Below, in pieces: positions 252-57,632 of a stretch of 64,000 bases of DNA. A program made the position numbers and the translations under genes. The notes beneath the pieces are model-generated. The model was not told the DNA's origin and did no database searches. It was given only the letters and a program-made list of their open reading frames with translations. Origin of the DNA: Chara braunii (taxonomy: Eukaryota; Plantae; Charophyceae); NCBI GenBank assembly GCA_003427395.1, contig BFEA01000028.1, forward strand, positions 2,241,001-2,305,000, written 5' to 3'. How positions within the stretch are numbered: the stretch's first letter is position 1; each line of letters opens with the position of its first letter.

Positions 252-1115
252 AGTAGCCACTCGCGCGCTCTCTCTCTCTCTCTCCCTCTCTCTCCCTCGC
301 GCGCTCGCCCGCCCGCTCGCCCCCGGCCCCTCCTCTCCTCTTACACATACACACACGTCCGAGTAGACGGTCTGAGTAGCCAGTCGAGAGTCCTGCTTAG
401 CATACAACGCAGACTAGCGGGTCGAGAGTCCTGCTTAGCATACAACGCAGACTAGCGGGTCGAGAGTCGAGCGTCTCTCTCACACACATGTCCGCGTAGA
501 GTTCCAAAGTCGAAGTCGAGCATATAGGGGCGGGGTTTCTTTGTGGCGCCGCCTCCCAAACCTGAGAAAGTTCGTTGCCGGCGGCAGCGTGCGGGGACCT
601 GCGCCGTGTACCGCCCCGCGAGGGGTACCGCCAGCATTCGCGGCGGGGCCAGGACCTGTGCTACGGCGGGTACCGGGCCAGTGCCGCGCCTCCTTCCTAA
701 TAATCTACTCTCAATCTGGACCGTGCACGGTCACGGTCCAGATTGAGAGTTGATTCGGGAAACCTGGCCTGAGACTCAGTGGGGGGAAACGCAACCCTGA
801 CGGGCTGCGAACATTTGAATGAATGTTCACTCAAATTCGAACATTTCAATGTTCACTCAAATTCCAACGTGGGTGGTCGTCGGGAGGGTTGGCATTTTGA
901 GGTGTAGGGGCCTTGCAAGGGCCAGGACCGCATAGGACCTTTATTCCCCCGAAAACGGGCCAAAAATATATATATATATATGACGAAAATGAGAAGTAAC
1001 AAACGAGAAAAAAAAGGGCAAGGCAGCGGGGAAGGGGAGGGAAGAACGAGAGAGAGAGAGAAAGGGAGAGAGGGCATCAGGGAGTTTCTGACTCGGCGTC
1101 AGAAACTCCCTGATG

Positions 1116-1186
<71 letters not shown>

Positions 1187-1793
1187 AGTGAACCATTCAC
1201 GAGAATGAATCTTCCTTTGATTCATTCTCGTTGGGCATGTCTGATTTCCTTTCTTTTTTTTCATTTTTTTTTGCAGAATGTTGTAGGTTTTTTTTTTTTT
1301 TTTTCTTCTTCTTCTTCTTTTTCTGTGATGTACTTCTTCTTTTTCAGTGATGTACTAGCGGTTGTCCGAGGCTCGGCAATAAAGTCCGAGGCTCGGGAAT
1401 CATTGGGCTACCCGTAGTCTGAGCCTCGGACTTGATAGCTGAGCCAGGTACTGGTGGTTTAAGCCTTTTTCGAAATTGAAACGGCGGGGTCAAGCTAGGT
1501 CCATGTAGTGTACAGCCAAGGGGTCCAGCATTTTACAAACGCCGGACCCTCAGGAACACCAAATTTTGACGAGTTTTCGGCCAAAAAACTCGGTTTCAAT
1601 TTCGTTCAGAAAATAAAAGATGTCCATGTTGACGAAATGGCAGTTACGTACACGTTGTATTCGAATACGTGTACCCTTTTTATTTGGGTTTCGAAAAGAA
1701 ACAAACTCTTGTATTCCAAAAAAAAAACATCTTTCTTTTTCGGAGGCCAGCACCTGCCCTTGTGCTCCCCGCCACTGACATGCTGCATGCTGC

Positions 1794-1847
<54 letters not shown>

Positions 1848-2607
1848 NNNNNNNNNNNNNNNNNNNNNNNNNNNNNNNNNNNNNNNNNNNNNNNNNNNNN
1901 NNNNNNNNNNNNNNNNNNNNNNNNNNNNNNNNNNNNNNNNNNNNNNNNNNNNNNNNNNNNNNNNNNNNNNNNNNNNNNNNNNNNNNNNNNNNNNNNNNNN
2001 NNNNNNNNNNNNNNNNNNNNNNNNNNNNNNNNNNNNNNNNNNNNNNNNNNNNNNNNNNNNNNNNNNNNNNNNNNNNNNNNNNNNNNNNNNNNNNNNNNNN
2101 NNNNNNNNNNNNNNNNNNNNNNNNNNNNNNNNNNNNNNNNNNNNNNNNNNNNNNNNNNNNNNNNNNNNNNNNNNNNNNNNNNNNNNNNNNNNNNNNNNNN
2201 NNNNNNNNNNNNNNNNNNNNNNNNNNNNNNNNNNNNNNNNNNNNNNNNNNNNNNNNNNNNNNNNNNNNNNNNNNNNNNNNNNNNNNNNNNNNNNNNNNNN
2301 NNNNNNNNNNNNNNNNNNNNNNNNNNNNNNNNNNNNNNNNNNNNNNNNNNNNNNNNNNNNNNNNNNNNNNNNNNNNNNNNNNNNNNNNNNNNNNNNNNNN
2401 NNNNNNNNNNNNNNNNNNNNNNNNNNNNNNNNNNNNNNNNNNNNNNNNNNNNNNNNNNNNNNNNNNNNNNNNNNNNNNNNNNNNNNNNNNNNNNNNNNNN
2501 NNNNNNNNNNNNNNNNNNNNNNNNNNNNNNNNNNNNNNNNNNNNNNNNNNNNNNNNNNNNNNNNNNNNNNNNNNNNNNNNNNNNNNNNNNNNNNNNNNNN
2601 NNNNNNN

Positions 2608-2681
<74 letters not shown>

Positions 2682-3019
2682 CACAAACACACACACACAC
2701 ACACACACATTCTGTTGTCTATTGGTGAGTAGCGGCACCTGTTGGGAACAGGATTGTTGGTGGTGGTTAAATGCCAGGGCACAAGAACCTGGCAGCACTG
2801 TGATTTGGATTTCCTTCCATAACCGTGGTGAGCTGATCGATCGTGCTCTTCCACAACCGGCCTCGCGCATGAATTTCACAAGGATTCTCCTTTTCCTCCT
2901 ATTAGCAAAGACTTCCTTCACGACCCTAACCTCACAGCCGAAATGTATCATGTAGGATCAGCCCTCATTAACCAGAATTTCGTCTGTGGGTTATTACCAC
3001 ATCCCGGTAAACAGATAAT

Positions 3020-3142
3020 GGACCTCGCTGCACTACTCGCCAAATGTGTGCAAAATGAAACTGAATCCTCCGCTAGAACATGGAAAGATACACCGCCATA
3101 TTTTTGTCTTTTGTGCATGTGGAAAGTAGTGGAGCGAGGCCC
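3020..3142. mobile_element. Short (~120 bp) PIF/Harbinger-like MITE, family H-short
   Basis: TIRs GGACCTCGCTGCACTACT / AGTAGTGGAGCGAGGCCC with AAT on both flanks. Related copies at 12969-13094 (reversed), 16605-17134 and, partially, 3712-3770. Confidence 0.8.
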
Positions 3143-3155
3143 AATGAGGCCCAAT

Positions 3156-3652
3156 GGGCCTCACTCCACTACTCTAGACTTGTGAAAAAAATCTAGAGTC
3201 CTTCTAGAGCTGTCAGAGTCACAAAAAGTCCTAAAACCTACGCATCGCCGCACTAGCTCTCGACTCTACAAAAGCTAGAGTTGCTCCGTCACTTTCTGAG
3301 TTCGGCCATTTCACTAAAGGACAGCGCCAGCCTGGGTTGTCCATCCAGACTCAAGGCCCACTCTAGGAAAATCAAGGCGTTTCAAGGGTCCTCCGGACCT
3401 CCCTTAAAAAAAACACCTTTGCAGGCAGGTACTCTAGATCAATATAGAGTGAGGGCCTACCCGCTCTGACACCTCTAGAAATGAAAAATCTACAGCGAAC
3501 CTATCGAGTAAGTGGAGCGATGACGACTCTATTACTTTTCTAGAGTCGTTCTGACAGCTCTAGAACAAGTTTTCGAGTGCCCATTTATAGAGTAAGTGCA
3601 GCCATGCCGCACTCTAGAAAAAGCTCGAATCTAGAGTAGTGCAGCGAGGCCC
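3156..3652. mobile_element. ~500-bp PIF/Harbinger-like MITE, family H-long
   Basis: TIRs GGGCCTCACTCCACTACTCTAGA / TCTAGAGTAGTGCAGCGAGGCCC. The interior is rich in TCTAGA and homologous to 39836-40733. Confidence 0.85.
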
Positions 3653-4019
3653 GATATCGAGAGAGGAGAATAGTGTAGCGAACACAGCTGTCCCCTATAT
3701 GAGGAGAAGACAGCTAGAACATGGAAATTTTCGGTCTTTTGTGCATGTGGAGAGTAGTGGAGTGAGGCCCAATACCGAGCGACGAGAATGCTGTAGCGAA
3801 TACAGCCATCCCCCATATGAGGAGAAGACAGATTTCTTTTGGATCACGAGAAAAAAAAAAGAAAAAAAAAAAAGAAAAAAAAAAAAGAAAGAAAGAAAGT
3901 AAAAAAAACTCTATTAGAATCTGGAAGCTCCTCTTAAATTTCTTTTTTTGCCTTTTCAAAAGAAAAAGAGGAAAACTCGAAAAGTGCAGTCCTGCCAAGT
4001 TGTACCTGCAGTGTTGGAC

Positions 4020-4121
4020 AAAAAGATTGGACCATTTCACCATTTACGTGTGTCATCCTTGCACAGGGGCCATGCTAATCTTCTCTGTACCGTTCTGATT
4101 ATAACGGACATCCCCAAGGAC
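4020..4121 (-). pseudogene. U6: Diverged full-length U6 snRNA copy
   Basis: The reverse complement reads GTCCTTGGGGATGTCCGTTATAATCAGAACGGTACAGAGAAGATTAGCATGGCCCCTGTGCAAGGATGACACACGTAAATGGTGAAATGGTCCAATCTTTT. The ACAGAGA box is intact, with multiple substitutions elsewhere. No clear TSD. Confidence 0.9.
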
Positions 4122-4420
4122 TCTCCCCTGCAGACTCTTCTTTAAACCAGCAACCCCGGTTTGCCACCACCGGCTACAGTCTCTTCCCCCGAATACAACG
4201 TACGATCATTATAGCTGAATTTGGGCTATCTTTCAGTCTAAAGACAGCTGTGCAAGAAGGGTAGGTCGGGACCGGTTTCTGCAGACAGACGAAAAAATTT
4301 TGGCTGCTACGTGGATTGTCATCTGATGGACCAGCCGAGAAATTGGAGCACCTGTGGTATCCGTCCCGTTGTGAAAATGGGTTGGTGGTTCAACGTGTGT
4401 TCCATAACACCTGATCTGCT

Positions 4421-4848
4421 TAGCATCGTGTTCGCGTTCGGAGGCAAACCCGAACATGTTCGCCCGAACACGAACTAACGCCCAAAACCCTCCGAACGCG
4501 AACATAAAAAAATATATATATCGTCACAAACAGAACTGCCCGGTAAACCGTAGGCAGAGAGAGAGAAGAGGACAACAAACGAGGGGCTGTATATATACAT
4601 ATAAAAAAAAAAAAAAAGTCTCAGAAAAATCTGAAAAAAATGTGTCATGTAAAACAACAATACAAGCAACTTTTGCCTTGGACTCATGTCCAAAAATGTG
4701 AGTGAAAAATCAAAAAGCGAAAAAAAAAAGATTTTTTTTTTTTTACAAAAAAAAAAAAGTTTGTCCGAACACATTCGTGAGCTGTTCGCTCGAATGCGTG
4801 AACACGTTCGCGTGAACACAGAGGGGCGTGAACACGTTCGCCGTGCTA
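4421..4848. mobile_element. hAT-like MITE with CGAACA(T/C)GTTCG subterminal repeats; related copy ~22853-23295
   Basis: TAGC...GCTA ends and repeated CCGAACATGTTCG. 23230-23295 is reverse-complement homologous to 4421-4510. TSD not recognisable. Confidence 0.55.
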
Positions 4849-5159
4849 CGCAGCTTGTGATGTTTCTAACTTTCTAGTCCATTTTCTTCCTCTCAGCTTC
4901 CTAGCACATTTAGCAGCTTCCAGTATCATCATGCACATGCATTTCCCCCATTGTTTGCTCGAGTTCACGAAATCCGGACACCATGGATGTAACGTACGAG
5001 AACCCAAGTCATATCATCATGATATCATCGATTGAAGAATTTTCTGATGAAAAATGCACGATGCAACAATGGCGAACAGTGGTGTATTATGCTTCATTTC
5101 AAATTTCGTCAAGCAGACAGACTTCCAAATGTGTTTTGCTCCATTTCACATTTGCCCAA

Positions 5160-6692
5160 TCAGATCGAGTTTCCGATGTTTCCACTCCGGCAAATCTCGC
5201 ACATTGAGATCATCATCCCTTGTATGAGCTGTGAGGCAGCTACTCGACTCGCACTGGCTGGGCTGGAGTCAGAAACAATACCAAACTGAGACCCTATGGG
5301 CGAGAACCCTGCCAACGCATAGCCAGTGAGGCCTGCACCTGTCTTCAGAACGACTTCCGTCTCGAAGCAGAGCTGGAGGCACTCCTTTAGCACGTCTAAC
5401 GGAAGGTGTTTGGCGTCCGCTTTTAGAAAAAACAACCGCTTCGGGTTTCGCAAACCGAGGGCCTTGGCGATCTGCACGTCAGTTTTTCCCGCGGCCATCC
5501 CCGCCTTCACTACAAGCCATTCCCTAAACTGCCCAACAACGGCCAACAGAATGCCGACAGGTTCCTCTTTTCCACTGGCCAACAGCAATTCCAAACCTTT
5601 GAGAGCCTCCCGAACATCCCCCTCCCTGATCCTGTCGGCCAATTGCACCGCGCGGAGGCATCCCACCCCCACGGGAACCAAGCCCGTCACCATATCCGCA
5701 TCAACAAACCCCCCGCTGGCCTCCGTAGCTAAGAGTGAGAGCTTCTTAAGCTCCCGATCAACTGTTAATGTGTTTCCAGCTGCAAATTCCGCCACGATTT
5801 CAGCTGCTTTCGGCGACAATTTCAACCCATCTCGAGCAGCTGCCTTATGTACCTGCTCCGTCAACTTTTTCTTGTTCCAGGTGTTTGGTTCAACAAACTC
5901 CTCCGCGTTAGCTAATTCTGGGTAAACGAGAGCTTTGCGCCAGCTTGTGTTAGGAGCAGCAGAAAGCGTGATCACCAGCCTCGAAGTCCGCGGCAGCATG
6001 CGAACTAAGTCCTGCAAATGAACCTCAAGCCAACTTGGGCAGCGTTTCGACATAATTTTCGGTTCGACGAGCCACACTGCACGGCCCTTCCCCCCTATCA
6101 GAGGTGCAGTCATTAAAGTCTGTATGGCAGATAGTACAGCCCCGTGATCATCCACCTCTTGTAATCGAAGGAAGTTCAGCTCCACACTCCCTTCGCCAAC
6201 CACGGCACTGATCGCAGCCTTTACAGCAGACTCCATTGCGACCATATCACCTCCATAAAATATATGCACTGGTTTGTCAATCGCATCTAAACGCTCTACA
6301 CCCTCTGCTGTGGGCGCTGGTTCTTTCTTACGCCTTGCTACTCGTACAGGTCCAAAGGTTGGAATAACACCAGGTCGCGGAGAAGGGATGGCGCAAGCGC
6401 TCCTCCTCCTGACGTGCAACTGTGGTGTTCGACTATGGCGTGGTGAGAAAGAATGCAGCCGGAATGGCTGGGGCTGCAGAACTTGACAGCTACCAGGGCT
6501 AGAGGAAAGAGAGAAGGTATCGGCGGCGTTCGTACGAGGAGTTGACCTCGCAGGTGTCACCAGATAGAGTTGGGAGAGTCGTTGTGCACGTTGCATCAGT
6601 CTTTTGGTGAGAAGACCAGGCCTGACGCTGACGAGCATTCCTGCTCTTGATGGCTGACACCCACTGCGGCCCACCTTCAGATGCTGTAGCAT
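5160..6692 (-). CDS. holA: DNA polymerase III delta subunit (HolA, clamp-loader)-like protein, cyanobacterial type, with ~140-aa putative organellar transit peptide
   Basis: Uninterrupted ORF (first ATG 6692). From ~aa143 it carries HolA-typical motifs: PVHIFYGGD, AIQTLMTAPLIGGKGRAVWL, EPNTWN, AAEIVAEFAAGNTLTVDRELKKL, LADRIREGD, EEPVGILLAVVGQFREWLVVK, IAKALGLRNPKRLFFL, ETEVVLKTG. The N-terminus is Arg/Ser/Pro-rich and acid-poor. Confidence 0.85.
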   Translation of the reverse strand: MLQHLKVGRSGCQPSRAGMLVSVRPGLLTKRLMQRAQRLSQLYLVTPARSTPRTNAADTFSLSSSPGSCQVLQPQPFRLHSFSPRHSRTPQLHVRRRSACAIPSPRPGVIPTFGPVRVARRKKEPAPTAEGVERLDAIDKPVHIFYGGDMVAMESAVKAAISAVVGEGSVELNFLRLQEVDDHGAVLSAIQTLMTAPLIGGKGRAVWLVEPKIMSKRCPSWLEVHLQDLVRMLPRTSRLVITLSAAPNTSWRKALVYPELANAEEFVEPNTWNKKKLTEQVHKAAARDGLKLSPKAAEIVAEFAAGNTLTVDRELKKLSLLATEASGGFVDADMVTGLVPVGVGCLRAVQLADRIREGDVREALKGLELLLASGKEEPVGILLAVVGQFREWLVVKAGMAAGKTDVQIAKALGLRNPKRLFFLKADAKHLPLDVLKECLQLCFETEVVLKTGAGLTGYALAGFSPIGSQFGIVSDSSPASASRVAASQLIQGMMISMCEICRSGNIGNSI

Positions 6693-7904
6693 TACCAAGC
6701 AAGAACGAACGAGTAGGAACGAATGGGCAAAGACAAAAAAGAATGGTTGTGATTCCTCTTTTACAGAAGGAAAGATACTTCTCTAGAATAAGTCCTCTTG
6801 CATCTACAGTTATGCTCTCTGCGCAATTACGTGATGATGTCTAAAAACAAAACACGGCCAAAAGATTCACTACTAATGACCCTCTGTACAATGTGACTGT
6901 TGAACTTACATTATATTAGAGTAATTAGGCAATAATAATAATAATACATAACCACTGCTTGTCTGATAAAGGCGCGCTTAGATTGTTGCAACTTTCTGCC
7001 GATTAGGCATTGGAGTGGCTAAAGAATTGCACACCCCATTCTGACAAACATGTGGGCACCTTGTGAACCCGCGCTATGTTAAAATGAATTCATTAGCAGT
7101 TGAAGACATCCAGCTCCGAGAATAGTTTGAGAAGCAAAAAGTCATGCACAAAGAAGATGCCACCGTGCAGTGTCAGACTGCCATGCTTCTTCGCTGCCAC
7201 AGAATAGCAAGCTGATCATCATAGCTGGGCATTATTGTGATGTGGAAGGGCTTGAACTCCGGACCTGTGAGTTACGTGTCCTATACTTATCTTGCAGAAA
7301 CAACCCTGCAAAATCCCTGCGTTTTTTATGTACATCCCTCGAGCTTTGTTTGGATGCCATTACTAAACCGAAGTTCAAGGTTTGGCCTTCGCGGTGGTCT
7401 AGATAGGGGGTCCAGGTTCAGGGGTGTGTTCCTCAGGCTTATGACCAGTCCAAAAGGCCATGGTTGGTTGCCTGTGCGTCTGGGACCTTGGTTCAAGACT
7501 TTGTTTTTTCCAAATTGTCAATGTTGTGATGCTGCAGGAACCCCTGTCTGTTATTGGACCGAGGCTCATGTCCAGTGCCACGTCAAAGTGGCTGTGGGTG
7601 ATACTTTTGTCTTCACCCATGTTCTCTCAATGGACCCGCCGCTCACACACTGGTACTGGAGCCTCTCTGCCTCCTCCGTCCTAGTCGTTACCCATCCACC
7701 CTACAGTTGTAGTCGTGCCAACAACCTTCCTTTTGTAGGAAGGCAACCAAAGAGCCTCTATAGGATCATGATAGCCTCCACCGTCCTACCTCTCATTACC
7801 CTAGGCTCCCTTCAAACCCTTCTGATCCATCCTCCTCCCCGTGTGAACAAAGGAGAAACCCACATTGAGGGCGGGACTGCACCATAAGGAGATTTGTGGC
7901 TTAA

Positions 7905-8075
7905 ACCACCAGTACACCCGGGCCTGCAGGCCCCTTACTGCACACCAAGCTTTTCTGAGCCGCCAGCGGAGCACTTTTTCTCTTTTTGGGCTGGCGCCAC
8001 CAGCCATTGCGGTCTGGTATCCCGAGCCTCCTACGAGTTTCCTTCCCAGCAAGGCTGGGGCCATGTACTGGCGGT
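7905..8075. mobile_element. TTAA-flanked MITE (TIR ACCACCAGTAC)
   Basis: TTAA|ACCACCAGTAC...GTACTGGCGGT|TTAA. Confidence 0.8.
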
Positions 8076-8791
8076 TTAAGGACTCAGGAGCCAATCCCTC
8101 TCTCCCCTCCAACTCCTTTAACCCCCCCCAAACCCCTTCTCCCTTGCCACAGTCACAAGGGCACCCCCCACTCCGTATGCATGCTTCCCATCCCACACCC
8201 ACATCCTGGGGTGAGCTTTCCTAATTAAGTGCACGCAAGGTTTGCTAATTAATATTCACACAAGGTTGCCTAATTAGGCACAATGCAAATCGTAGCTATC
8301 CCAACCATGTGTAGGTTCAGGCCCTTCATGGTCATCAGGGTTACTAGATGTCCGAACTAGCCATCTGGATTGGACCGTCTGGGCAAGATGGCCTGCCAAC
8401 TTAGGGGTTTTTTTTTTTTTTTGGGGGGGGGGNNNNNNNNNNNNNNNNNNNNNNNNNNNNNNNNNNNGGGTTACTTAGGTTTCTGTCCTGCTTCTGACTC
8501 TTTTCGGGCTTTCTTTTTGCATTGCATCTGTACTTTTTTCGGTCTTCTTTCAATCGTCTTCTTTTGCTTCAGATTGCATGGAGACACCCTATGTGCATTT
8601 TGCGGTAGCAGCCCAAGGGCACAATTGCTTGGCTCATCGACAATGAAGGATAGGTTTAGAAAAAGAACGGAAAAGAGGACATGCATACAATTGCTTGACG
8701 CAAATAGAAACAACGGAAAAAAGAACATCAATGAAAAAAAAGCACAGGAAACACAAGCAATTGTTGATGTGAACAGGGAAATAGGTGGGCG

Positions 8792-8842
<51 letters not shown>

Positions 8843-9703
8843 CAAAGGAGGAGTAGAGGGAGGGGGAGGGGAGGGGGGGGAGGCGGCGCGGGCCGGTGGC
8901 GCAGGGCGGGGCAGCGAGGAAAGAAGCAAAGGAAAGGAAAGATAAGTAACAGGTGCGGAAAGACCAAAAGAAGAAGAAAAGACAAGGAACAGGTATGCAA
9001 GGGACAAAAAAGCAAGGAATGCAGGAAGGCAATGAGAATGGGGTTGAGAAGGAAAGATGGGGACGGAGGAAGAGGCGACAGATCATAAACGGAACGTCCG
9101 CACTGAGGAGGACCACAGCAAAAAGGAGGACAAGGACGAGGAGAAGGCAGCAACACTGGCAGAGGAGAGAGAAGATGACAATGATGACAATGGCAATAGC
9201 AGTGACACTAACGACAACAATAAATAAACGAGAGGAGGAGGAGGAGGAGGAGGAGGAGGAGGAGGAGGAGGAGGAGAAGCGAACCTTGAAATTTCCTTCA
9301 TGGCTGCTTTGGAATTTGCGGCAATGCTCCACCCACATGTCGCATCTACTCAGCTTCTGTACGAAGAAACAAGGCACAGGGTTAATGTCCATTCCGAACA
9401 AGGAGGTAAGGGCCTTGAGATCAGCCGTACAGCCCAAGCTTCTCATGCCTGCTCGGCCCAAGCTGTTGTGAATAAGAGGTCCGCTGCAGATTGGTTCTGC
9501 CGATCACCCTTGATTGTGGAGGGGAGGAAAGACATAACCATCAGTGAACTGACAAGCACCGCAGAAGAACCTCAGATCGCCAGTACATGTTTAAACCACC
9601 AGAATGTTTCCCAGCCTTTTTGCAGCCTGCCGCCTCACAAAACATACCATCAGTGAACTGACAAGCACCGCAGAAGAACCTCAGATCGCCAGTACATGTT
9701 TAC

Positions 9704-9912
9704 ACCACCAGTATGTTTCCCAGCCATTTTGCGAGAACGCAGCCATGCGCGCGCGGTGTTCTGTGGCATGTACCGGCCTGCCACGTCACAAAACACACAT
9801 CCACACAATTTATGTCCCGTGCACGGACTGTTTTGCTTTGATGACGGTACATCCTGCAGACCGCGGAGCACGGCCACGTTCTCACAAAATGGCTGGGAAA
9901 CGTACTGGTGGT
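9704..9912. mobile_element. TTAA-family MITE preceded by a ~110-bp tandem duplication of its left junction
   Basis: ACCACCAGTATGTTTCCCAGCCATTTTGCGAGAACG ... CGTTCTCACAAAATGGCTGGGAAACGTACTGGTGGT|TTAA. The stretch 9536-9625 is repeated from 9646. Confidence 0.8.
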
Positions 9913-10693
9913 TTAAGGCACTGATAGCAGCAACAGCAGAGTCCAGCCAAAGATACACACCACTGTTCCGATTCAACGGTGACTGCACACAAACTGCTAC
10001 TGAGTTGAAGCAGGTGCAACGGACCTGATATCCCAGAAAAGGGCCAAAATCGTGAATTTTTTGTTTTGAAGTAACGAGTCCGCTATGGATGGGGGGTGGT
10101 ACGAGCATCCTCCCATAGTATTCTCGGGCACCGGGTGCTCTGATCTATTGGTGGGGAGCCTCACATGCTGGAAACCGGGTCCAGGATCCCAGATACATGT
10201 GTTCTATCTCAGACTTTGCATACTTCGCTTCCGACTCCCAGAATTGTAACTTGGGCATCGCCAAATCGCAAATTTGCCCTCGAACAAAACCCCAGCAAGA
10301 GTCATGTCACTGAGTACGATCACAATTCAGCGGTTCAAAAACGGGCCTAGCTCAGGCTCAGTTGATACACCGATGAACTGTTGAAAAATACAGACGTGTG
10401 GTCGAATCCGAATGGAGCTAGATGGATGAAAATTCTCAATTACCTGGCGCTGGTCAGTTCTATGATAATACATCAAGGCCATGGCCCTTTTAAAATCTAG
10501 GAAAAAACGTAGAAAGCGGTCCCCATCACGAAGATCTCGATTTTTTTTATTTTTTTTTTGTAACTAAATTATTAAACCCATATTTGCTCCAGTTCCACGT
10601 AGATTTTATTGTTTGCTCTCCTTGGGCCAACGAACTAACATGTTAATCCATAATAAATAAACAAAACCAAGAGTTAGTTGAAATCCTCGTAGG

Positions 10694-10846
10694 ATACCTT
10701 TCTCGGCCTTTTGGCTAAAAATAGATCAAGTGCACTGTATCTGTTCTGGTCAGTTTAATATCTGATCCGTGGTCCATGGAGCCACAAGGGCAGGAAAAAA
10801 AAAAAAAAAAAAAAAAAAAAACGAAAAAGAAAAAGTGAAAAAAAAG
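10694..10846 (+). pseudogene. U2: U2 snRNA 5'-half retrocopy with poly(A) and 14-bp TSD
   Basis: ATACCTTTCTCGGCCTTTTGGCTA(AAAAT)AGATCAAGTG...TCAGTTTAATATCTGATCCGTGGTCCATGGAGCCACA, with an A tail at 10795-10846. Flanks are GAAATCCTCGTAGG (10680-10693) and GAAATCCCCGTAGG (10847-10860). Confidence 0.92.
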
Positions 10847-10998
10847 GAAATCCCCGTAGGTACTATTCACTTGTGGCTGTACTGCCCATTAGCGGATGAA
10901 TTGTTGGAATAGTAGAAAAGACAATGGCATTCCCTAACTGCAGTGGTGTTTGGCTGGTCTGATAACTGAATGCCTACTGAAAAGTTACCAGCAGACTA

Positions 10999-11103
10999 CA
11001 GTCTTACCCCGAATACAACATACTGTCGTTATAGCTGAATTTAGACTGAAAGATGCCCCAAATTCAGTTATAATGACCGTACGTTGTAATCGGGGGAAGA
11101 CTG
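10999..11103. mobile_element. ~105-bp palindromic Tc1/mariner(pogo)-like MITE, TA TSD
   Basis: TA|CAGTCTTACCCCGAATACAAC...GTTGTAATCGGGGGAAGACTG|TA. A partial copy lies at 4177-4242 and a diverged one at ~12468-12580. Confidence 0.8.
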
Positions 11104-11399
11104 TAGGCGTATAGTAGATGATCTGATCCGTTCTTCAGGCCTGCGGGCCCCACCGCACACGCACGGTCTCACCCTCAGCCACAGGAACTGTCTCTTAACC
11201 GCTACAGCCAGGACATGGTGTTCAAAAGTGGTATGGTGGAACCATACCCGTGGTGATATCCACCCCACCCCTGAAAGGCTGTAGTGTCCAACTCACTTAC
11301 ACCACACACAACACCACATGGGCACGGCAATTCAACGCACACTTCGCTACAATCAGCACAGCGACCCACCACCACCGCTACTTCAGGCTGGGGCTAGCT

Positions 11400-12026: not shown

Positions 12027-12968
12027 TTAAGTCCGGGAAGCTTTTGTTGTAAGATGGGATGCTGGATCCGGTTTCCAGCAAAGCCAGTAATATCCGGGGG
12101 CTCAGTCCCACCTGTGCCTTTCCGTTGTAGGAAGCTACCACAAAGCGACTGGCGGGCGTCTGGGGACCATGGATTGTGTCAATCCATGGTCCTTGGGCGC
12201 ACGCCATTCTCTTCGTTGTAGCCTGTAGCCTCCTAGAACGAAAATGCCAAGGTGGGACCGAGCCCCGGGTTGAATTGTGAGGTCCCCACGGGCCTCTGAT
12301 TCTCTTTCAAATACAAAAGATTAAAATTTTTCAAAAAGAAGAAAAGAAGAAATCATTTTTCGTAGGGTGCACTCAATACTTGTCCTTTCCTGGCTGTATC
12401 TGCCAACAAGCACCGCCAAATTAGCTTGAAAGCATTCTAGTGTAATATTATGATGAAATGGACTAACCCGGGTTTCACCCCAATAGAACGCACCCCCGGT
12501 AATTATTGCCACACACCTGGACTGAAAGGTGCACCAAATACAGGTATAATGATCGGCTGTTCCTATCGGGTGAATAGGGCAATTGGGACCTAACGAGCCT
12601 CAGAAGGTAGCTGCACACAAAAACAACTCTGATTCACAGAGCCTCCCTCCTCTACACAACACTCTACATGCATTTGGACGCTTTTTGGACCAGGTGCATT
12701 CGGAAGAGTCCAACTTTTTGAGTGAATCGGGTCCAGAAAACAGTGCACTTGTGCAGGGTGGTTGCTATCGTAGAGGCTTACCGGCAAGATTGGCTCTTTC
12801 ATTCCTCTCATGCCAACGGAAACAGACGGCCAATGACATCCTCCTATTCTTGGTTCAAAGATGTGCTTCGACTCCCCGCACTCAGATCTCCGCCTAGACT
12901 TGGTTCCATAATAACTCTGACAAAACAGGAATTGCAAATTGCACAACACAGTTAAAACTCGCACAGAT

Positions 12969-13280: not shown

Positions 13281-14171
13281 TGTTTTGGGTCTCCGTTAAC
13301 CGCCTCTCGTGTGTGTGGGGGGGGGAGGGGGAGGGCACGTGCATGCACACCTGCAAAAGTTTCTGAGAGAGAGCGAGCGAGAGGGCTACACGTGGGTATA
13401 TGATCAATTTGCATCACGGGCACAGGGGTATAAGAACAATTTGCACGGTCCACTTGGATCATGGGTACTTTGACAATTCCAAGTATTTCCGTGGTTGGGT
13501 ATAACGACAATTTCATGGTCCCAAACGATCCCCGGGCACACCAAAAATTTGCGCAGCAGGGTTCTGAGATATAGCAACAAGTTTGGCCTCCGTCCCAGGG
13601 GTATAACAGAAAATCCAAATTAAAAGTGGGTACAACTACAATGCCCCCCTTCATCTCGCCGGATACGGATCTGATCGAGATGATGACGTGGCAGAGGAGC
13701 TCTGCGCCGCATTTCGCTATGAACATAAGCAGTCAGTGCGCCATGCCACTCGGGGGCACCAACGGCCTATCTCCAGGTGCCAAGTCCCACTAGCAGCGTT
13801 GAGCTACCTCAACGCCTGAATCTGGACGTGTTTGTGGAGACGTGCAGTTCAGGAAACTCAACACCATTTCTGCACATCTCCGTAAAAGCGTCCAGATTCA
13901 GGCGTTGAGCATACTCAACGCTGCTAGTGGGACTTGGCCCCAGGTGCCGGGTGCCAAGCTTGCCCAGGAAGGTACATGAGGCCAATGGGGATTGAATCAT
14001 TGAACCCAATACCTGCGCCGTAGTTACCCCAAAATTAAAAATAAATTTTATTTTTAAATTTAAATTTTATTTTTTAATTTAAATTTTATTTTTTAATTTA
14101 AATTTAAATTTTATTTTTTAATTTAAATTTAAATTTTATTTTTATTTTGAATTTTCTTTTGAATTTTATTT

Positions 14172-14200
14172 TTTATGCGTGTCATCCTTGCGCAGGGGCC

Positions 14201-14232
<32 letters not shown>

Positions 14233-14250
14233 ACGGATGTCCCGAAGGAC
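14172..14250 (-). pseudogene. U6: 3'-truncated (tailless) U6 retrocopy with 15-bp TSD
   Basis: Near-perfect U6 nt 1-~79 ending at GACACGCATAAA. It is flanked by the direct repeat TTGAATTTTATTTTT (14159-14173 and 14251-14265) within an AT-rich tract. Confidence 0.92.
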
Positions 14251-15398
14251 TTGAATTTTATTTTTATTTTTTGTTTTTATTTAATTTTTAATTTAATTTT
14301 AATTTTTATTTTAATTTTTATTTTGGTAAAGAATTTCGATGTCACCCTGAATGCCACTTGCGAGCCTTACGAACTGAGCTAGGCCGCTGGATCATTTCTT
14401 TGCGTTCCTTTCGTTGCCTTCGTTTTTTATTTTTATTTTTTTCTTTTATTCGTTTTTATTTTTTTTCCGTTTCTCTTTTTTTTCCTCCTTTTTCCATGTC
14501 CACTTCTTCCCCCGAGATTGAAGGAATGGCATGGGTTTCGTAAATCGTCCGTCGGTTCCTTCACGCGGATCACCCCGCCGACCTCGTGCTTCCATAATCA
14601 AACAGAAAAGAGGCCAGCTGTCGTGACACGCGTGCAGAAGACGACCGGCGAACCTCCCAGGCCATCTCCTCAGCTTAAGGTCATGAAGGTTTTTTGGGGA
14701 AGTCATCAGTTAAATACCATTTCACGAGGATCGGTTGGTAGAGACGACGGCGGGAAATTCCAGAACAGGATCACTGTGCAGCAGCCAGAGAAAGGCATCA
14801 GGACCGAGGGAGAAGAGGAGGAGGAGGAGGAGGAGGAGGACGAGGAGGAGGAGGACGAGGAGGGAGATGCGGGGAGCAAGGACACCACACAGAGAGAAAA
14901 AAAAGACACAGAAAAAGGAGGAGGAAACAGAGAAGCTCACCTCGCCCCCCCACCTTTCTTCCCCTTACCTTCGGTAAGACAATATCTCGAGATATGGGAG
15001 CCGAGATGTGTTCCATGACGGCATGCATCGCGGCAGAACTGCGAAGCATCGACTTCGAAAGATAAAGAGTGTCGGCGCGAAGTCCAAGCGCCGCCATAGC
15101 TGCTGAATTCCGACCAATCTGCGCCGGATGAGTAACACCTCCCTCCTTCCCTCCCTCCCTCCTTCGACTCTTGACCCGCCGTAGTACAACAGGGCGCCAC
15201 GTGGCTCAGGTCTCACCCCGCTTTCGAGAAGAGACCTCGACAACACACGACTTCTGGTCTCCCTCGCGCACTCACTCATTCTTTGTCGGCCACGTGGCAC
15301 CCACCTCCCTCCCACTCACTCATTCTTCGTCGCCCACGTGTCCCTCACCTCCCATGCCGCCCTCTGACGCCACAAATGGCCAGTCTTCCATTCGAGCA

Positions 15399-26781: not shown

Positions 26782-27317
26782 CATGGACACCCAAGGACAC
26801 CATTAGAAAAAACGAACAAACCATGGTTGTGTGTGCAAGTGTGCAAACATGCACACACGCTCAAACGGGCAAACAAATATCACCCCTAACCCCAGCACGC
26901 TGTATTGCAGCAGCAGTGTACCACATGGCTGCAAAGACATCCCAACAATGGTCGAGGCACTGCAGCAGGCCATCCCTCATGGTGCCTACACAGTTGCATT
27001 GTTAAGGGAACTGGCAGTTTTGAAGGTACCACCAGTAGATGAACTGGCAATTTTGAAGGTACCGCCAGGAGACGAACTGGCAATTTTGAAGGTACCACCA
27101 GTAGACGAACAACGGGGGCTGTTGCAGAAAGGAGCACTGAAAATTGTTCAAGTGTCTGATCCACAAAGCAGCATGGCTCCTTGTCACCCTATGTTCAAAT
27201 TTCTTCCTTTTTGCCTTGTGGCCATTCTCCACGTCTTTTGCCCCAGAGGTCACTGTTGGAGAGGAGGGCTCCGAAGAAGGCGAAACAGATCTTCAGGGAA
27301 ACAACACAGGATCTCCT

Positions 27318-27450
27318 GTCGTTCGGGAGGTCTGTTAAAATTGGAATGATACAGAGAAAGAAGATTAGCATGGCCCCTGCTGTGCAAAGATGACACGCAT
27401 AAATCAAGAAATGGTCCATTTTTTATTATTTTTTATTTTAGGGAAAAAAA
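27318..27450 (+). pseudogene. U6: Full-length U6 retrocopy with A-tail and 10-bp TSD
   Basis: GTCGTTCGGGAGG...ACAGAGAAAGAAGATTAGCATGGCCCCTG...AAATGGTCCATTTTTT, then a T-rich linker and an A run. AGGATCTCCT is repeated at 27308-27317 and 27451-27460. Confidence 0.9.
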
Positions 27451-30014: not shown

Positions 30015-30079
<65 letters not shown>

Positions 30080-30162
30080 GGTCCGATGGACCACAGATCA
30101 GATATTAAACTGATCAGAACAGATACTACACTTGATCTTAGCCAAAAGGCCGAGAAAGGTAT
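30015..30162 (-). pseudogene. U2: Young U2 snRNA 5'-half retrocopy with long poly(A) and TSD
   Basis: The reverse complement reads ATACCTTTCTCGGCCTTTTGGCTAAGATCAAGTGTAGTATCTGTTCTGATCAGTTTAATATCTGATCTGTGGTCCATCGGACCGT plus ~60 A. ACCCCCCCTT is repeated at 30004-30013 and 30163-30172. Confidence 0.94.
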
Positions 30163-49059: not shown

Positions 49060-50889
49060 TTACTCTCCAATCTGTGCTCGGAGGCGAACTGCACGTCTTC
49101 CCTCCTCTGCAGCTGAAGCTGCCCTTTTTGAGATTTCTGCAAAGTCCCCTGCCATCATGGCTGCCCGGTCGAAGATCGCATCGGACAAGACGACAGCTAC
49201 AGCCCCAGCAGTGACGTATGGCTCTATCATGCTTACTGTTATGCCATGAGCAGGGATTAAGGGCACTTTGCCAAATGGCCTACACATCGCTTTAACAAAG
49301 TTCACCCCTCCAACCGCTGTGACAGGGAAGACCTTCACAGCTCGAGCTCCGCTCCTGGTGGCATTCATGAGCTCCGTGGGAGTCATGGCACCCGGAATCA
49401 GTAGCGCAGGCCCCTCCTTCAGCCATCCAACCAGATGTTCATCCATCCCAGGACTCATGAGGAACTTCGCACCCGCTTTAATGACTGAAGCAGCATCCAA
49501 CATGCCGAGAACTGTCCCCGCACCAATCAAAGCATTAGGATATTCAGCTACCAGAGTATGAATGATTTCATCTGCAGCAGGAGTTGTGAGGGGAATTTCC
49601 AGCACAGAAACAGATGCATCAAGAGCTGCACGTGCCGCTTGAAGTGCCACATCACTGTCATCTGCTTTCACACAAGCAATGATTCCAGACGCACGAATCC
49701 TCTCGAGGATCGCATCGAGAGCGGCTGCCCCTCGCCGATCCTCATCCTCAGTCAATGAACCTCTGCTGCTGCTCCTTGTGTCTCCTATGGAATCCCGACC
49801 AATTACGCTCAAGGCTGATCTGCCCAACAGCCCACTTGCTCTAGCAGTACTGCGGATGTCAGGATCACCAGGTAGCCATCCGGTCGGCTCCTTTCTCAGG
49901 ACTCCTCGAGGTTTTCGGCCCGGATCCCCGGTTACCGAGTACGGAATCGACTCGACCAAGGGGCGTGCTATTCCTCTCCTCTCTTCTCCCTCATTCAACA
50001 CTTCTGGCGAGCAATCTGGGACCTCATCATTCTCCTTGTCATTCGCAGAAGGACTTGGCCTTTCCATCTTGTACGGCCACCAATTCTCTTCCAGAGGGTT
50101 TTCAAAAGCATCCAAAGGGTTTTCAAAAGCATTACAACTGTTAGACCGGTGCTCCGGCTCTTCACCTTCTCTGCGCGTCTGCTGGCTGCCGCTTCCATCA
50201 AGAGAGACATGAGATGATTGTGAATCCTCATCTGTAACTTTCCACCCCGTCTCTAGTACACGCCTCACTCCCTCTGCTTGCTGCATCTGCCCTTTCCATA
50301 TTGTCTCAAGTGCTTCTTGATGGTATTCCTTATACCTTTCCCCCTCGGGGGTGCTCCCTGCCCACTCTTCCATATGATGAGGGTAGCTGTTCCCTCCAAC
50401 ATCGCTCCTCGGTTGTCTGAAGCCATGCAGGTGCAGCCTAGCACTGGGAAACACTATGGATCCAGTCAGAAACCTTCCCACCTTGGTGCAGACTGACTGC
50501 CGTGCTCTTCTCACAAGCCGTGGACTCGAATGACAATCCAAGTTCTGGTTCCGGGACGTTTTCCAGGAGCGTGATGTCCGAGACGACGATGGAAGCAACA
50601 ATGACGTCGCTCGCACTTCCAACCTGATACCGGCCTGGTGATGGGGGTCAGAAAGATTCAAAGGCGCCCTGAAACACAAAGGTACCCTGAAACCTTCACA
50701 GACTACCGATAAGATCTGGCGGTGATCCCTCGCGATCGAAAATGCACACTGCCCTGCAGTGCAAGTCTGCACACAGGAGCTGTGTGCCCCGGCATGGGAG
50801 GTGGAAAAACATTTTGTCCCCTTCCCCTGAGAAGCAAATGCAGCTGCGTAGCAGTACTTCATAGATTGTGGGCTGGTGATGGTGTGCAT
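49060..50889 (-). CDS. eda: KDPG/KHG aldolase (Entner-Doudoroff aldolase family) with ~390-aa N-terminal extension
   Basis: The C-terminal ~215 aa (about 49060-49720) contain SGIIACV, VLEIPLTT (catalytic Glu position), LIGAGTVL, AGAKFLMSPG, IPGAMTPTE and AVKVFP (Schiff-base Lys). Single open frame; first ATG at 50889. Confidence 0.88.
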   Translation of the reverse strand: MHTITSPQSMKYCYAAAFASQGKGTKCFSTSHAGAHSSCVQTCTAGQCAFSIARDHRQILSVVCEGFRVPLCFRAPLNLSDPHHQAGIRLEVRATSLLLPSSSRTSRSWKTSRNQNLDCHSSPRLVRRARQSVCTKVGRFLTGSIVFPSARLHLHGFRQPRSDVGGNSYPHHMEEWAGSTPEGERYKEYHQEALETIWKGQMQQAEGVRRVLETGWKVTDEDSQSSHVSLDGSGSQQTRREGEEPEHRSNSCNAFENPLDAFENPLEENWWPYKMERPSPSANDKENDEVPDCSPEVLNEGEERRGIARPLVESIPYSVTGDPGRKPRGVLRKEPTGWLPGDPDIRSTARASGLLGRSALSVIGRDSIGDTRSSSRGSLTEDEDRRGAAALDAILERIRASGIIACVKADDSDVALQAARAALDASVSVLEIPLTTPAADEIIHTLVAEYPNALIGAGTVLGMLDAASVIKAGAKFLMSPGMDEHLVGWLKEGPALLIPGAMTPTELMNATRSGARAVKVFPVTAVGGVNFVKAMCRPFGKVPLIPAHGITVSMIEPYVTAGAVAVVLSDAIFDRAAMMAGDFAEISKRAASAAEEGRRAVRLRAQIGE

Positions 50890-53805
50890 CCTTGCGCACG
50901 GGTGCAAGCAGATCAGATCAATATTTGCAACACCTCTCTCGATAACAAGGCAAAAAAGTGAAAAACTTGTTTTGGTAACAGTGAAAGCAGACGGATATTA
51001 ATTGTACACTTTATTCTTTTCAAGCTCTTGTCAAAGGATTCCGAGCATGTGCCCCGAGCCAACACCGAGGTTTCGGTGTGAATCTGATCAATGTCGATAC
51101 AGCGAAACCCCCACAGCCGTCATGCCAATGTAGATGGATGTCCATGCAACAACGTGACGTGCATGCCAAAGCCTATACACCTCTGAAGCCCTTAAGTACT
51201 TACACACTTAGAGCATTGCTCACACTGGGACTTCTTTTGCCGAAATCTGTTCGTAATTGTCGCCTGATACATACACAGAAGTACGAGTGTGAGGATGCTC
51301 TTATTCTCTTCTTGCCGCCGCACGTATGCTTAATTAATTACAGCTCCCTCCCGCCGCTCTACTTACAGCACTTGTTTCCCTGCTCCTGCACATCCTTCAA
51401 TGCAGTTCCATACCTGCAGTGCACATACATAAACCAAACCAGCCGCAGCACCTATGTACAGCCCCAAGCCACATTAACATACAACGCTCCCCTGCACGGC
51501 CCCGCACCCCCCCCCCGGCTGAATATAATATGCAACTTCACCTGCCATGCAGCAATATTTGCAACGCCACCTGCCACCGGCCATACAGCAATGTCCACTG
51601 TACAAACTACTAGCTATGGACTCTAGCAAAGGACCCTGCAATCAGGAAGGGGACGGATGAAAATCACCAAGGAAATCACGGAGCAGGCACTGGAGATTTA
51701 TAGCGCTGCATCCACAAGAGATAACTCCAACTCCAGGAATGCAGACAAACAGGTCAGATGCGAATCGCTGGGTTTGTGGGACTGAGCACCCCAAGCAGCA
51801 TTGCCCAACTGACAAGTATCTTGCGAATATATAGGACTAGCGGAGGGAGCGATAGGTGCAGAGAGATGGAGAGTAGATAGAGAAGTACCTGGGAGAAGAA
51901 ATAGACAGGTACTTAGGGAGATGAAAGAACTAGACGAGGAGGTGATGATGGGTGAAACCAGGAGGAAAGGGATGGTCAGTGGAGGACGAATTACTGGCAA
52001 GGGGCCTTGACGAATCCAACAAAGCTGCGTTTCCTAGTGTCCATGACACTGCCGCAAACCTACACTCACTACTGTCCTTCGGTTTAGAGTGGGGAAAGGC
52101 CCTAGTGATAGAAGACAAAGAAAGGGAAGAAGCAACCATATAGATTCTACAGCTATACCTCAGGTGATTGCTTGCCGACCGCATCCAAGAAACCAGATGA
52201 GCGGTCATCAAAGTTCAAGTGGAGAACCGACCACCCACTCACCCCACGGCAGTCGTTTCCCTCAAGCCACTGGACACCTCAAAGTCCCTGCTTGGCAACT
52301 GTAGAAGGGGTTGTGATGGTGAAAGAAGCTATACCAAAGACTTAACACTTGGCGTTCGCACGGAACGACAAGGAATAGACAACACCAAGTGTACAAGCGC
52401 ACAAACAAATGTGACAAAAGAGTCAAAAACGCAAACGCAACGCCAACGCCAGTCTGTATTTACGCACTCCACGGTGATCTCTCTACTACCTCATCACCTA
52501 CCAAGCACAACCAACTCGCCAACCATCCAATCAGAGAACTGTATGCTCGCTTGTGTTTCGCCCCTTCACGCCAAGATGATCTGCATTGCTGAGCAGCCCA
52601 ACAATTTTTCAAATCTCGAACGCGTTATGGGTTCGAGGAACCAACCAACAACTCACTGCCACCGCAACCCCTCTCGATCACAGGGGCCAAAACACCAGCA
52701 ACGTCAATTCACTGACAACACCAACCAGCAAAAGCCAAACCACCCCTAGATGAAAAGAGTCGTGCCCTCGAGCAGCAGCATCATATATACACCATACTGC
52801 TCTGCTCAGAGTTCAGCGCATGTCATTGAGGCCGCACACTCTGCCACACACACCAATCTGCCCCACACTGCTCTTGTCTCAAGCCCACTGCGGCGAGAGG
52901 CATTCGCCACAAAACTAAGCACAAGTGCTGCTCATTCGTGAGGACCACAACGGTTCTCACGCTCGTTTAGCTCATAGTAACAAACACAGAAACGTTCAAC
53001 ATGTTCCTCTGCTCAGTGTTCAGCGCATGTCATAGGGGCCGCACAAGCGGGCGTCCACACCAATCTTCCCCTCACAGCTCGTCTCACGGCCACTGAGTCG
53101 AGGCATTTGCCACGTCACTATGCAGAATACCTGTTTGCCAAGACCAGAACTTCCTTCACGCCCGCTTAGCCTGCAGTACCAAACAAGAAACACCCAATCA
53201 CTTTCTTATTAGATCCCTTCCTCGAAAGAACAACAACAAGAAGAACAACAATGGCAACAACAACCGCAAAGAGAAGAAGAACAACAACAACAACAACCCA
53301 AAACACGACAAAAACCAAAAAAAAAAAGAGAAGAAAAAGAAATGACAAGAAATTCCTCAAAAGAACAATGACAACAACAATCAATCAAGAGCAGAGCAAC
53401 AACAACAACAGCAACAAAGAGACAAGAAGAAAACATGAAATGGAATTCCTCAAAAGAACAACAAGAATGAAGACAAAGAACGAGCAGAGCAAAAAACAAC
53501 AAAAAGAAAAAGAATGTGAGACGAAGAAGAATTGAATTGAATCTTACGCTTCTCATGACGATCCCAAGAATCGAACACGTCCTCCCGGTCAGGAGGCTGG
53601 CACTCAACCAAACGGCTAAGTGGACTGGGGTGAAAGTTAAGCCCCAAGATGAGCACTTAACCCCACCCCAGCACAGGTACTCGTTTTTCCCCGTGACCCG
53701 GTGTACCCAGTCACACACACCCAACACAGGCGTCGATGCAGCCACCACACAATGTACGACCTCATTGCTGGTTGCTACGCAGCTAAGAGTTGAAGAAACA
53801 ACAGC

Positions 53806-54570: not shown

Positions 54571-54633
54571 TTTTTTTTTTCAAAAAATTTGGACCATTTC
54601 TCGATTTATGCGTGTCATCCTTGCGCAGGGGCC

Positions 54634-54665
<32 letters not shown>

Positions 54666-54683
54666 ACAGATGTCCCGAAGGAC
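54571..54683 (-). pseudogene. U6: Near-perfect full-length U6 copy with poly(A) tail and TSD (retrocopy)
   Basis: U6 body at 54683-54582, followed by G(A)10. Flanks are AATGATGGCTTATTTCTTC (54552-54570) and AATGATGGCTTTCTTC (54684-54699). No plant USE/TATA seen upstream. Confidence 0.93.
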
Positions 54684-56929: not shown

Positions 56930-57546
56930 GCCGGGAGGAGGAGAATGACGCTACCTGCTCCCGTAGCTTGCTACATTGATTGAAAAAAACAAAAATAAAC
57001 TCAGCCTCCTTCACGATTCCTCATGCTCACCTACAGATTGACAGACGGTGGAGACCGGTGAGCCATTTCCCGCTTCCCTACGAAATAAAAAATCCCCCCC
57101 CCAAAAAAAAACAGCGCCCTCGCCGCCTCTCCTTCCTTTTTCTGCTCAGAACATACTCGTACTAGGACTTTGCTGGATGTATATGACTGCTTTTCTGACC
57201 CGGGGTGGACGCACCTGACCGCCATTACGTCCAGAGAGAAGTGCATAAAGTCCTAGTGTGACTATGCCCTCAATGTGAGAGCCCAGCCCCTAACTTCCCA
57301 ATCATTCACTTCTTTTTTTTTGTCGGAACACTCCTCGATTTGTGTGCGACTATCCCAATCATTCCCGAACTATTGCACAAGGCCCATTCCTGCTGATTAA
57401 CGCCTGGCCGCATCCCAGGGTAAAAACACCAGAAGGATGACTCGATTTTTCCCTGACTATGGCCCTCAATGTGAGTTTTCTGGTGTTTTTAGTGAGTGTT
57501 GGGTCGCCGCACTGCTCACGGATAAATCGTGTTTAATATGTCAGAC

Positions 57547-57632
57547 TTCTCGATTAGTGCGTGTCATCCTTGTGCAGGGACCATGCTAATCTTCTCTGTA
57601 CGTTTCCAAATTTAGCGGAGGTCCCGAAGAAC
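57547..57632 (-). pseudogene. U6: Diverged 3'-truncated U6 copy
   Basis: The reverse complement reads GTTCTTCGGGACCTCCGCTAAATTTGGAAACGTACAGAGAAGATTAGCATGGTCCCTGCACAAGGATGACACGCACTAATCGAGAA. Confidence 0.88.

Follow-up and report, generated by a model that had tools for sequence, protein, structure and literature searches.

Whether a nuclear genome of the green lineage still encodes a bacterial clamp-loader delta subunit (HolA), and what such a protein would be doing there, is the question raised by a minus-strand open frame at 5160-6692 in a 64-kb window (the whole stretch of DNA analyzed) of the alga Chara braunii. A preliminary description of the sequence had located this frame, which is indeed present, and had read it as an intact single-exon gene for a cyanobacterial-type HolA, possibly part of an undescribed organellar replication or repair system in a lineage whose organelles were taken to contain no Pol III parts. 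The gene is recorded in the databases as CBR_g30332, 619 aa, located on scaffold BFEA01000028.1 (5.37 Mb), and its UniRef name, an automatic label, is already DNA polymerase III subunit delta.

The premise about green-lineage organelles is out of date. According to a May 2026 preprint by Antoine et al., nuclear-encoded and plastid-targeted cyanobacterial Pol III subunits alpha and tau/gamma occur in some green and red algae and follow primary endosymbiosis, while beta was reported only in Pyrenomonadales cryptophytes and in none of the Archaeplastida; the green and red algal subunits were read there as scattered, clamp-less remnants (10.64898/2026.05.23.727376). The subunits surveyed were alpha, beta, tau/gamma, and epsilon only, and the legend of Fig. 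S8 adds one eukaryote, Chara braunii, to each of the alpha and tau/gamma trees (27 to 28 and 25 to 26) (10.64898/2026.05.23.727376). The words "holA", "delta", and Mesostigma have zero occurrences in the main text of the same preprint (10.64898/2026.05.23.727376), and our literature search, with thin coverage of subscription journals, found no report of holA in algae. Since alpha and tau/gamma have already been reported as plastid-targeted, the Pol III system itself is not undescribed, and novelty is confined to the subunit: the HolA delta of Chara is a probable, hitherto unreported component of the plastid Pol III relic that was first described in 2026. It resembles the relic of Archaeplastida and Pyrenomonadales, as the preprint presents it, in being a nuclear cyanobacterial subunit with an N-terminal extension and a patchy distribution, in an alga already included for alpha and tau/gamma; the difference is that the survey there was made without delta.

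Gene Structure, Expression, and Genomic Context

The NCBI model of the gene comprises four exons and three introns, all of phase 0, and places a 247-aa leader ahead of the domain. RNA reads were mapped to positions 4500-10400 (5,901 letters). The features of the transcription unit are as follows.

14969..15097, minus strand: exon 1 with the start codon, 43 aa (NCBI model; beyond the read-mapped stretch 4500-10400)
12782..12916, minus strand: exon 2, 45 aa, canonical splice sites (NCBI model; beyond the read-mapped stretch)
9285..9356, minus strand: exon 3, 72 nt, 24 aa (NCBI model and RNA contigs of two studies on 9286-9357)
6684..9284, minus strand: intron 3, GT..AG, phase 0, with an assembly gap near 8433-8467 (NCBI model and RNA contig ends)
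5160..6683, minus strand: coding part of exon 4, 507 aa and stop, with 135 aa of basic leader followed by the whole HolA domain (NCBI model, RNA contigs, and stranded reads)
4653..5159, minus strand: transcribed 3′ untranslated region, about 500 nt (RNA contigs of two studies)

In two studies, other than those that supplied the raw oligo-dT reads described below, RNA contigs match the window perfectly from 4653 or 4666 up to 6684 and end at the AG acceptor of exon 4, carrying 29 letters from elsewhere. Second contigs from two studies occupy 9286-9357, after which 337 and 590 further letters come from elsewhere, lengths that would fit 264 coding nt plus the 5′ UTR. The contig ends agree with the GT..AG splice sites in the NCBI model, the joint between exons 3 and 4 being deduced from the contig ends and not read as joined sequence. 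The ATG at 6692, from which the frame had been taken to start, falls within the last 9 nt of intron 3. Because the contig ends match the model splice boundaries, the gene is spliced, this ATG is intronic, and the HolA domain runs from residue 248; a single-exon gene starting at 6692 is thereby ruled out. The residues 1-140 that had been put forward as the leader for localization are likewise not the true N-terminus, which is now corrected for future localization work.

In the bin beyond the contig end, the depth (3.04 and 3.47) equals exactly the contribution of the exon-4 contigs alone, so the intron is entered by no contig; a few raw reads do lie inside intron 3, and a minor unspliced transcript form is possible. 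Read depth over exon 3 is about 1.5 times that over exon 4 (52-55 versus 33-38), from which about one third of transcripts would leave the exon-3 donor differently, by intron read-through or another splice. The RNA contigs break at that donor (9285).

The mapped stretch is present in 19 runs from six studies of one organism, with near-identical sequence across runs. Raw oligo-dT reads from two runs cover the frame thinly, at a depth of about 0-5, and their first mates all map to the plus strand, the orientation that the usual stranded libraries should give for a minus-strand mRNA. Expression is low. The RNA-seq evidence bears out the view that this is a genuine, spliced, expressed nuclear gene, and expression in stranded oligo-dT libraries makes contamination very unlikely. 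A bacterial contaminant, an assembly error, or a recent insertion in decay could be argued from the assembly gap in intron 3 and the lack of a known close relative; this reading is barely credible in view of the spliceosomal boundaries, the stranded oligo-dT reads, the 500-nt 3′ UTR, and an identity of only about 30% to any bacterium among the best 150 of 458 matches. Contamination itself is very unlikely given the splice boundaries and reads together with the large scaffold of 5.37 Mb and an ortholog in Mesostigma, described below, and was rejected.

The surroundings are eukaryotic, as the preliminary description had noted from the snRNA copies and inverted-repeat elements. Seven snRNA-like copies lie in the 64 kb, five of U6 (4021-4121, 14150-14250, 27313-27425, 54583-54683, and 57532-57632) and two of U2 (10694-10905 and 30053-30162); two fall within holA introns and several adjoin long A/T runs, which suggests snRNA-carrying or snRNA-targeting mobile elements. 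Small inverted-repeat (MITE-like) elements are found in the holA introns at 9700-9916, 10996-11106, 12094-12269, and 13773-13944. A short repeat at 4512-4585, just beyond the 3′ end, attracts RNA reads and contigs from other loci to a depth above 1000 and is a highly transcribed dispersed repeat. The window also holds a second bacterial-type gene, an intact KDPG/KHG aldolase (Entner-Doudoroff eda) of 615 aa at 49060-50907 on the minus strand (TIGR01182, 170 bits against a cut-off of 156), a family known in plants.

Identity and Functional Sites of the Encoded Protein

Homology, fold, and tree work used exon 4, not the joined four-exon protein. Profile searches confirmed the proposed HolA identity: TIGR01128 (holA) matched with 128.9 bits (E 2.5e-37) against a curated cut-off of 80, spanning model positions 2-302 of 316, and both Pfam domains scored above their gathering thresholds, PF06144 (N-terminal) with 30.7 bits versus 21 and PF21694 (C-terminal) with 44.8 versus 27, at E values of 3e-7 and 1.5e-11. 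The motifs first noted in the translation (GQFREWLVVK, NPKRLFFL, and MISMCEIC) are all present. The domain features and functional positions are located as follows.

5334..6266, minus strand: TIGR01128 holA match (profile search, AlphaFold2 model, and fold match to 3zh9)
6266-5961, minus strand: PF06144 match (profile search)
5645-5331, minus strand: PF21694 match (profile search)
6096..6116, minus strand: clamp-binding plug position, LMTAPLI, corresponding to the E. coli delta Met71/Leu73/Phe74 region (profile alignment; role from PMC11139829)
5433..5459, minus strand: primer-template-binding loop position, LGLRNPKRL, versus E. coli HRVWQNRR (profile alignment; role from PMC2425476)

The last 372 aa were modeled with AlphaFold2 at a mean pLDDT of 85, giving three domains and a low-confidence loop at 320-337. 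The model's top structural match is 3zh9, the delta subunit of B. subtilis (E 6e-14, TM 0.63-0.68), followed by E. coli clamp-loader chains that include E. coli delta. A direct sequence search of the PDB with the Chara delta gave no match, whereas the profile and fold searches did. The gene product is a real member of the HolA family. With chromosomal and plasmid cyanobacterial HolA it shares the full-length domain match, the fold, about 30% identity, and the EP, QFRxWL, and NPKRL motifs; it differs in its nuclear location, three model introns, 247-aa leader, replaced KPD motif, and a flexible insertion of about 30 aa before the last helix. Land-plant STICHEL-like DnaX proteins also have bacterial clamp-loader ancestry and reside in green-lineage nuclear genomes; they are tau/gamma-type ATPases, whereas the Chara protein is a delta. 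A DnaX or STICHEL-like identity was rejected (PRK14948, 20.3 bits against a cut-off of 593).

Binding and opening of the beta-clamp is the established role of delta, achieved in E. coli with a plug formed by Met71, Leu73, and Phe74 (PMC11139829), and the E. coli delta loop HRVWQNRR binds the primer-template (PMC2425476). At the hydrophobic plug, which lies at the end of helix 4, the usual Phe is replaced by Leu in Chara and one residue is inserted, while Mesostigma (LSMRPF) keeps the Phe. The collar-domain DNA loop retains the cyanobacterial form NPKRL in Chara and is degenerate in Mesostigma; neither alga retains the KPDxRxK motif, which has been replaced. Among columns at least 80% conserved in cyanobacteria, 42 of 63 are kept in Chara, compared with 32 of the 85 columns of moderate conservation and 28 of the 171 that vary, a retention that fits what would be expected under selection for delta function. 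The kept plug and DNA-loop positions would predict a divergent beta-clamp.

These sites also bear on the reading of the protein as a clamp-less remnant, in which delta would serve tau/gamma, or a STICHEL-like DnaX, as a structural partner, and the complex would bind DNA or tether alpha without any beta. The change of Phe to Leu and the inserted residue at the plug are consistent with it, as are the altered KPD motif and the C-terminal insertion gained in both algae and the absence of beta from Archaeplastida reported in the preprint (10.64898/2026.05.23.727376). On the other side, Leu, Val, Ile, Met, and Trp are also found at the plug Phe position in cyanobacterial HolA, and Mesostigma retains the Phe itself. 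The beta filter of the preprint, PF00712 with E at most 1e-20 (10.64898/2026.05.23.727376), is far stricter than the 3e-7 and 1.5e-11 reached by the Chara delta against its own domains, and a beta that had diverged to the same degree would have escaped it. A clamp-less remnant appears unlikely.

Relatives and Origin

Run exhaustively against 1.84 billion cluster representatives, phmmer returned 458 matches, of which the best 150 were listed, 30 of these being identified by name and the others judged from length and N-terminus. Among these 150, the best matches are cyanobacterial in type, with about 30% identity, and the sole eukaryotic nuclear protein identified is Mv02990 of Mesostigma viride; they include no red-algal, cryptophyte, Klebsormidium, or zygnematophyte delta. 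The second eukaryote-associated match among the best 150 of 458 is a chromatophore gene of Paulinella micropora (BBL86208.1), which like the Chara gene represents a cyanobacterial delta inside a photosynthetic eukaryote. It differs in being organelle-encoded and leaderless and in belonging to a separate picocyanobacterial-type clade, and it stems from an independent endosymbiosis. Word-index protein searches yielded nothing beyond the Chara gene itself and Mesostigma, and metagenome scans with either algal delta gave no match. Viral contigs gave none to the Chara delta; one weak phage record came from a faecal sample (E 2e-3). A genome scan matched only four cyanobacterial loci.

Mv02990 is 563 aa long, begins with a basic leader of 135 aa, and scores 86.6 bits on TIGR01128, above the cut-off of 80. 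Its precomputed Pfam column is empty and its gene model is unnamed; domain-based surveys would therefore miss it. It is 29% identical to the Chara delta and has a 70-aa internal low-complexity insertion. The two algal proteins are sisters in all trees, share 17 residues rare in cyanobacteria (at most 10-12 in any cyanobacterial pairing), and have in common the replacement of the KPD motif, one extra residue ahead of EP, and the insertion preceding the last helix. In a 28-row mixture-model tree with two eukaryotic rows, the pair (98/96) lies within a cyanobacterial clade (100/98), many tips being classed as cyanobacterial by motifs and grouping; in FastTree, which warned of long branches, it came out as the sister group of all the cyanobacteria. 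Since both algal branches are long, their union could be aided by attraction, and the shared indels provide independent support. Judged from its sequence, Mv02990 is the ortholog of the Chara delta, and the cyanobacterial origin originally proposed for the Chara gene is likewise supported by the trees.

The donor within cyanobacteria is less sharply defined. A holA of their own is common on large cyanobacterial plasmids such as Chroococcidiopsis plasmid pA (locus 904-10211), often with dnaX, holB, or dnaN next to it, and the plasmid copies are spread over several separate clades. As plasmids carry holA together with dnaX, dnaN, and holB, a plasmid donor is conceivable, and the same protein with the same job could have arrived by one ancient horizontal transfer into a streptophyte ancestor, from a free-living cyanobacterium or as a plasmid module (dnaN-dnaX-holA-holB). 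Such a transfer would agree with a delta seen in just two streptophytes among the best 150 of 458 matches, with best single matches to plasmid-type HolA (31.5% for Chroococcidiopsis plasmid pA, where dnaN and dnaX occupy the same locus), and with an AU test that did not reject grouping with the Chroococcidiopsis-type plasmid clade (p-AU 0.143). Placement with Gloeomargaritaceae is, however, equally unrejected (p-AU 0.122), and the row most similar to the Mesostigma delta is a Gloeomargaritaceae protein. The algal pair joins the wider plasmid-type clade in just 16 of 1000 bootstrap trees, and the preprint traces alpha and tau/gamma to primary endosymbiosis (10.64898/2026.05.23.727376). Horizontal transfer is regarded as quite unlikely.

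Leader and Predicted Localization

The better-defined part of the leader lies in exon 4.

6279..6683, minus strand: largely unstructured leader segment, rich in Arg, Ser, and Pro and poor in acidic residues, model aa 113-247 (composition and fold of the segment)

The basic, acid-poor stretch described ahead of the domain was recovered by a composition count: residues 113-235 contain 2% D+E and carry a net charge of +20 over 123 aa. Residues 1-112 are less clean, with 7-12% D+E. Folded alone and without an alignment, which is weak evidence, the exon-4 part of the leader showed little structure. At 247 aa, the leader greatly exceeds the usual length of a transit peptide. An N-terminal extension of about 400 residues likewise precedes the domain of the KDPG aldolase in this window, which indicates that long extensions occur on other Chara genes of such type. 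Both the Chara and the Mesostigma deltas carry basic leaders, mutually unrelated in sequence. Organelle import of the Chara delta is likely, with leader composition as the targeting evidence.

An Arg-rich, acid-poor make-up is common to plastid and mitochondrial presequences, and a leader of this kind would also suit mitochondrial or dual targeting, with a role in DNA maintenance there. POP enzymes have been described as dual-targeted (PMC6523293). The cyanobacterial origin of the gene and the plastid targeting predicted for the other Pol III subunits in the preprint (10.64898/2026.05.23.727376) argue against this option, which is distinctly improbable.

A Candidate Plastid Clamp Loader

The explanation considered probable is that the protein is the delta subunit of a working plastid clamp loader, encoded by an endosymbiotic gene, imported, and assembled with tau/gamma and delta-prime to load a cryptic beta for Pol III alpha. 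A cyanobacterial Pol III clamp-loader delta gene would have moved from the plastid ancestor to the nucleus, gained introns and an import leader, and been retained from the time of the last ancestor that Mesostigma and Chara share, if not from earlier. The precursor would be imported into the chloroplast and then trimmed, and the mature delta would join tau/gamma and delta-prime in a pentameric loader. Its hydrophobic plug would open a divergent, as yet unrecognized beta-clamp, which the loader may set on primed plastid DNA for Pol III alpha, so that Pol III would work beside POP in plastid replication or repair. Counted against a working loader are the replaced KPDxRxK motif, the degenerate DNA loop in Mesostigma, the low expression, the long leader, the length of both branches, and the lack of a red-algal, cryptophyte, Klebsormidium, or zygnematophyte delta among the best 150 of 458 matches, together with the absence of a beta-clamp from Archaeplastida in the preprint (10.64898/2026.05.23.727376).

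As a further, tentative proposal, which we hold to be possible and somewhat doubtful, early streptophytes like Chara and Mesostigma may keep a complete working Pol III (alpha, tau/gamma, delta, delta-prime, and a cryptic beta) in the chloroplast beside POP. Since opening beta is the established job of delta, a direct test would be a renewed look for a divergent beta and for delta-prime in Chara and Mesostigma. An expressed delta conserved in two distant streptophytes argues for a clamp loader that may still be assembled there, and bears on when and how plastids exchanged the bacterial replisome for POP. If a complete Pol III has indeed been kept, the switch to POP only would have come late, toward land plants, and could be studied in a cultured model alga.
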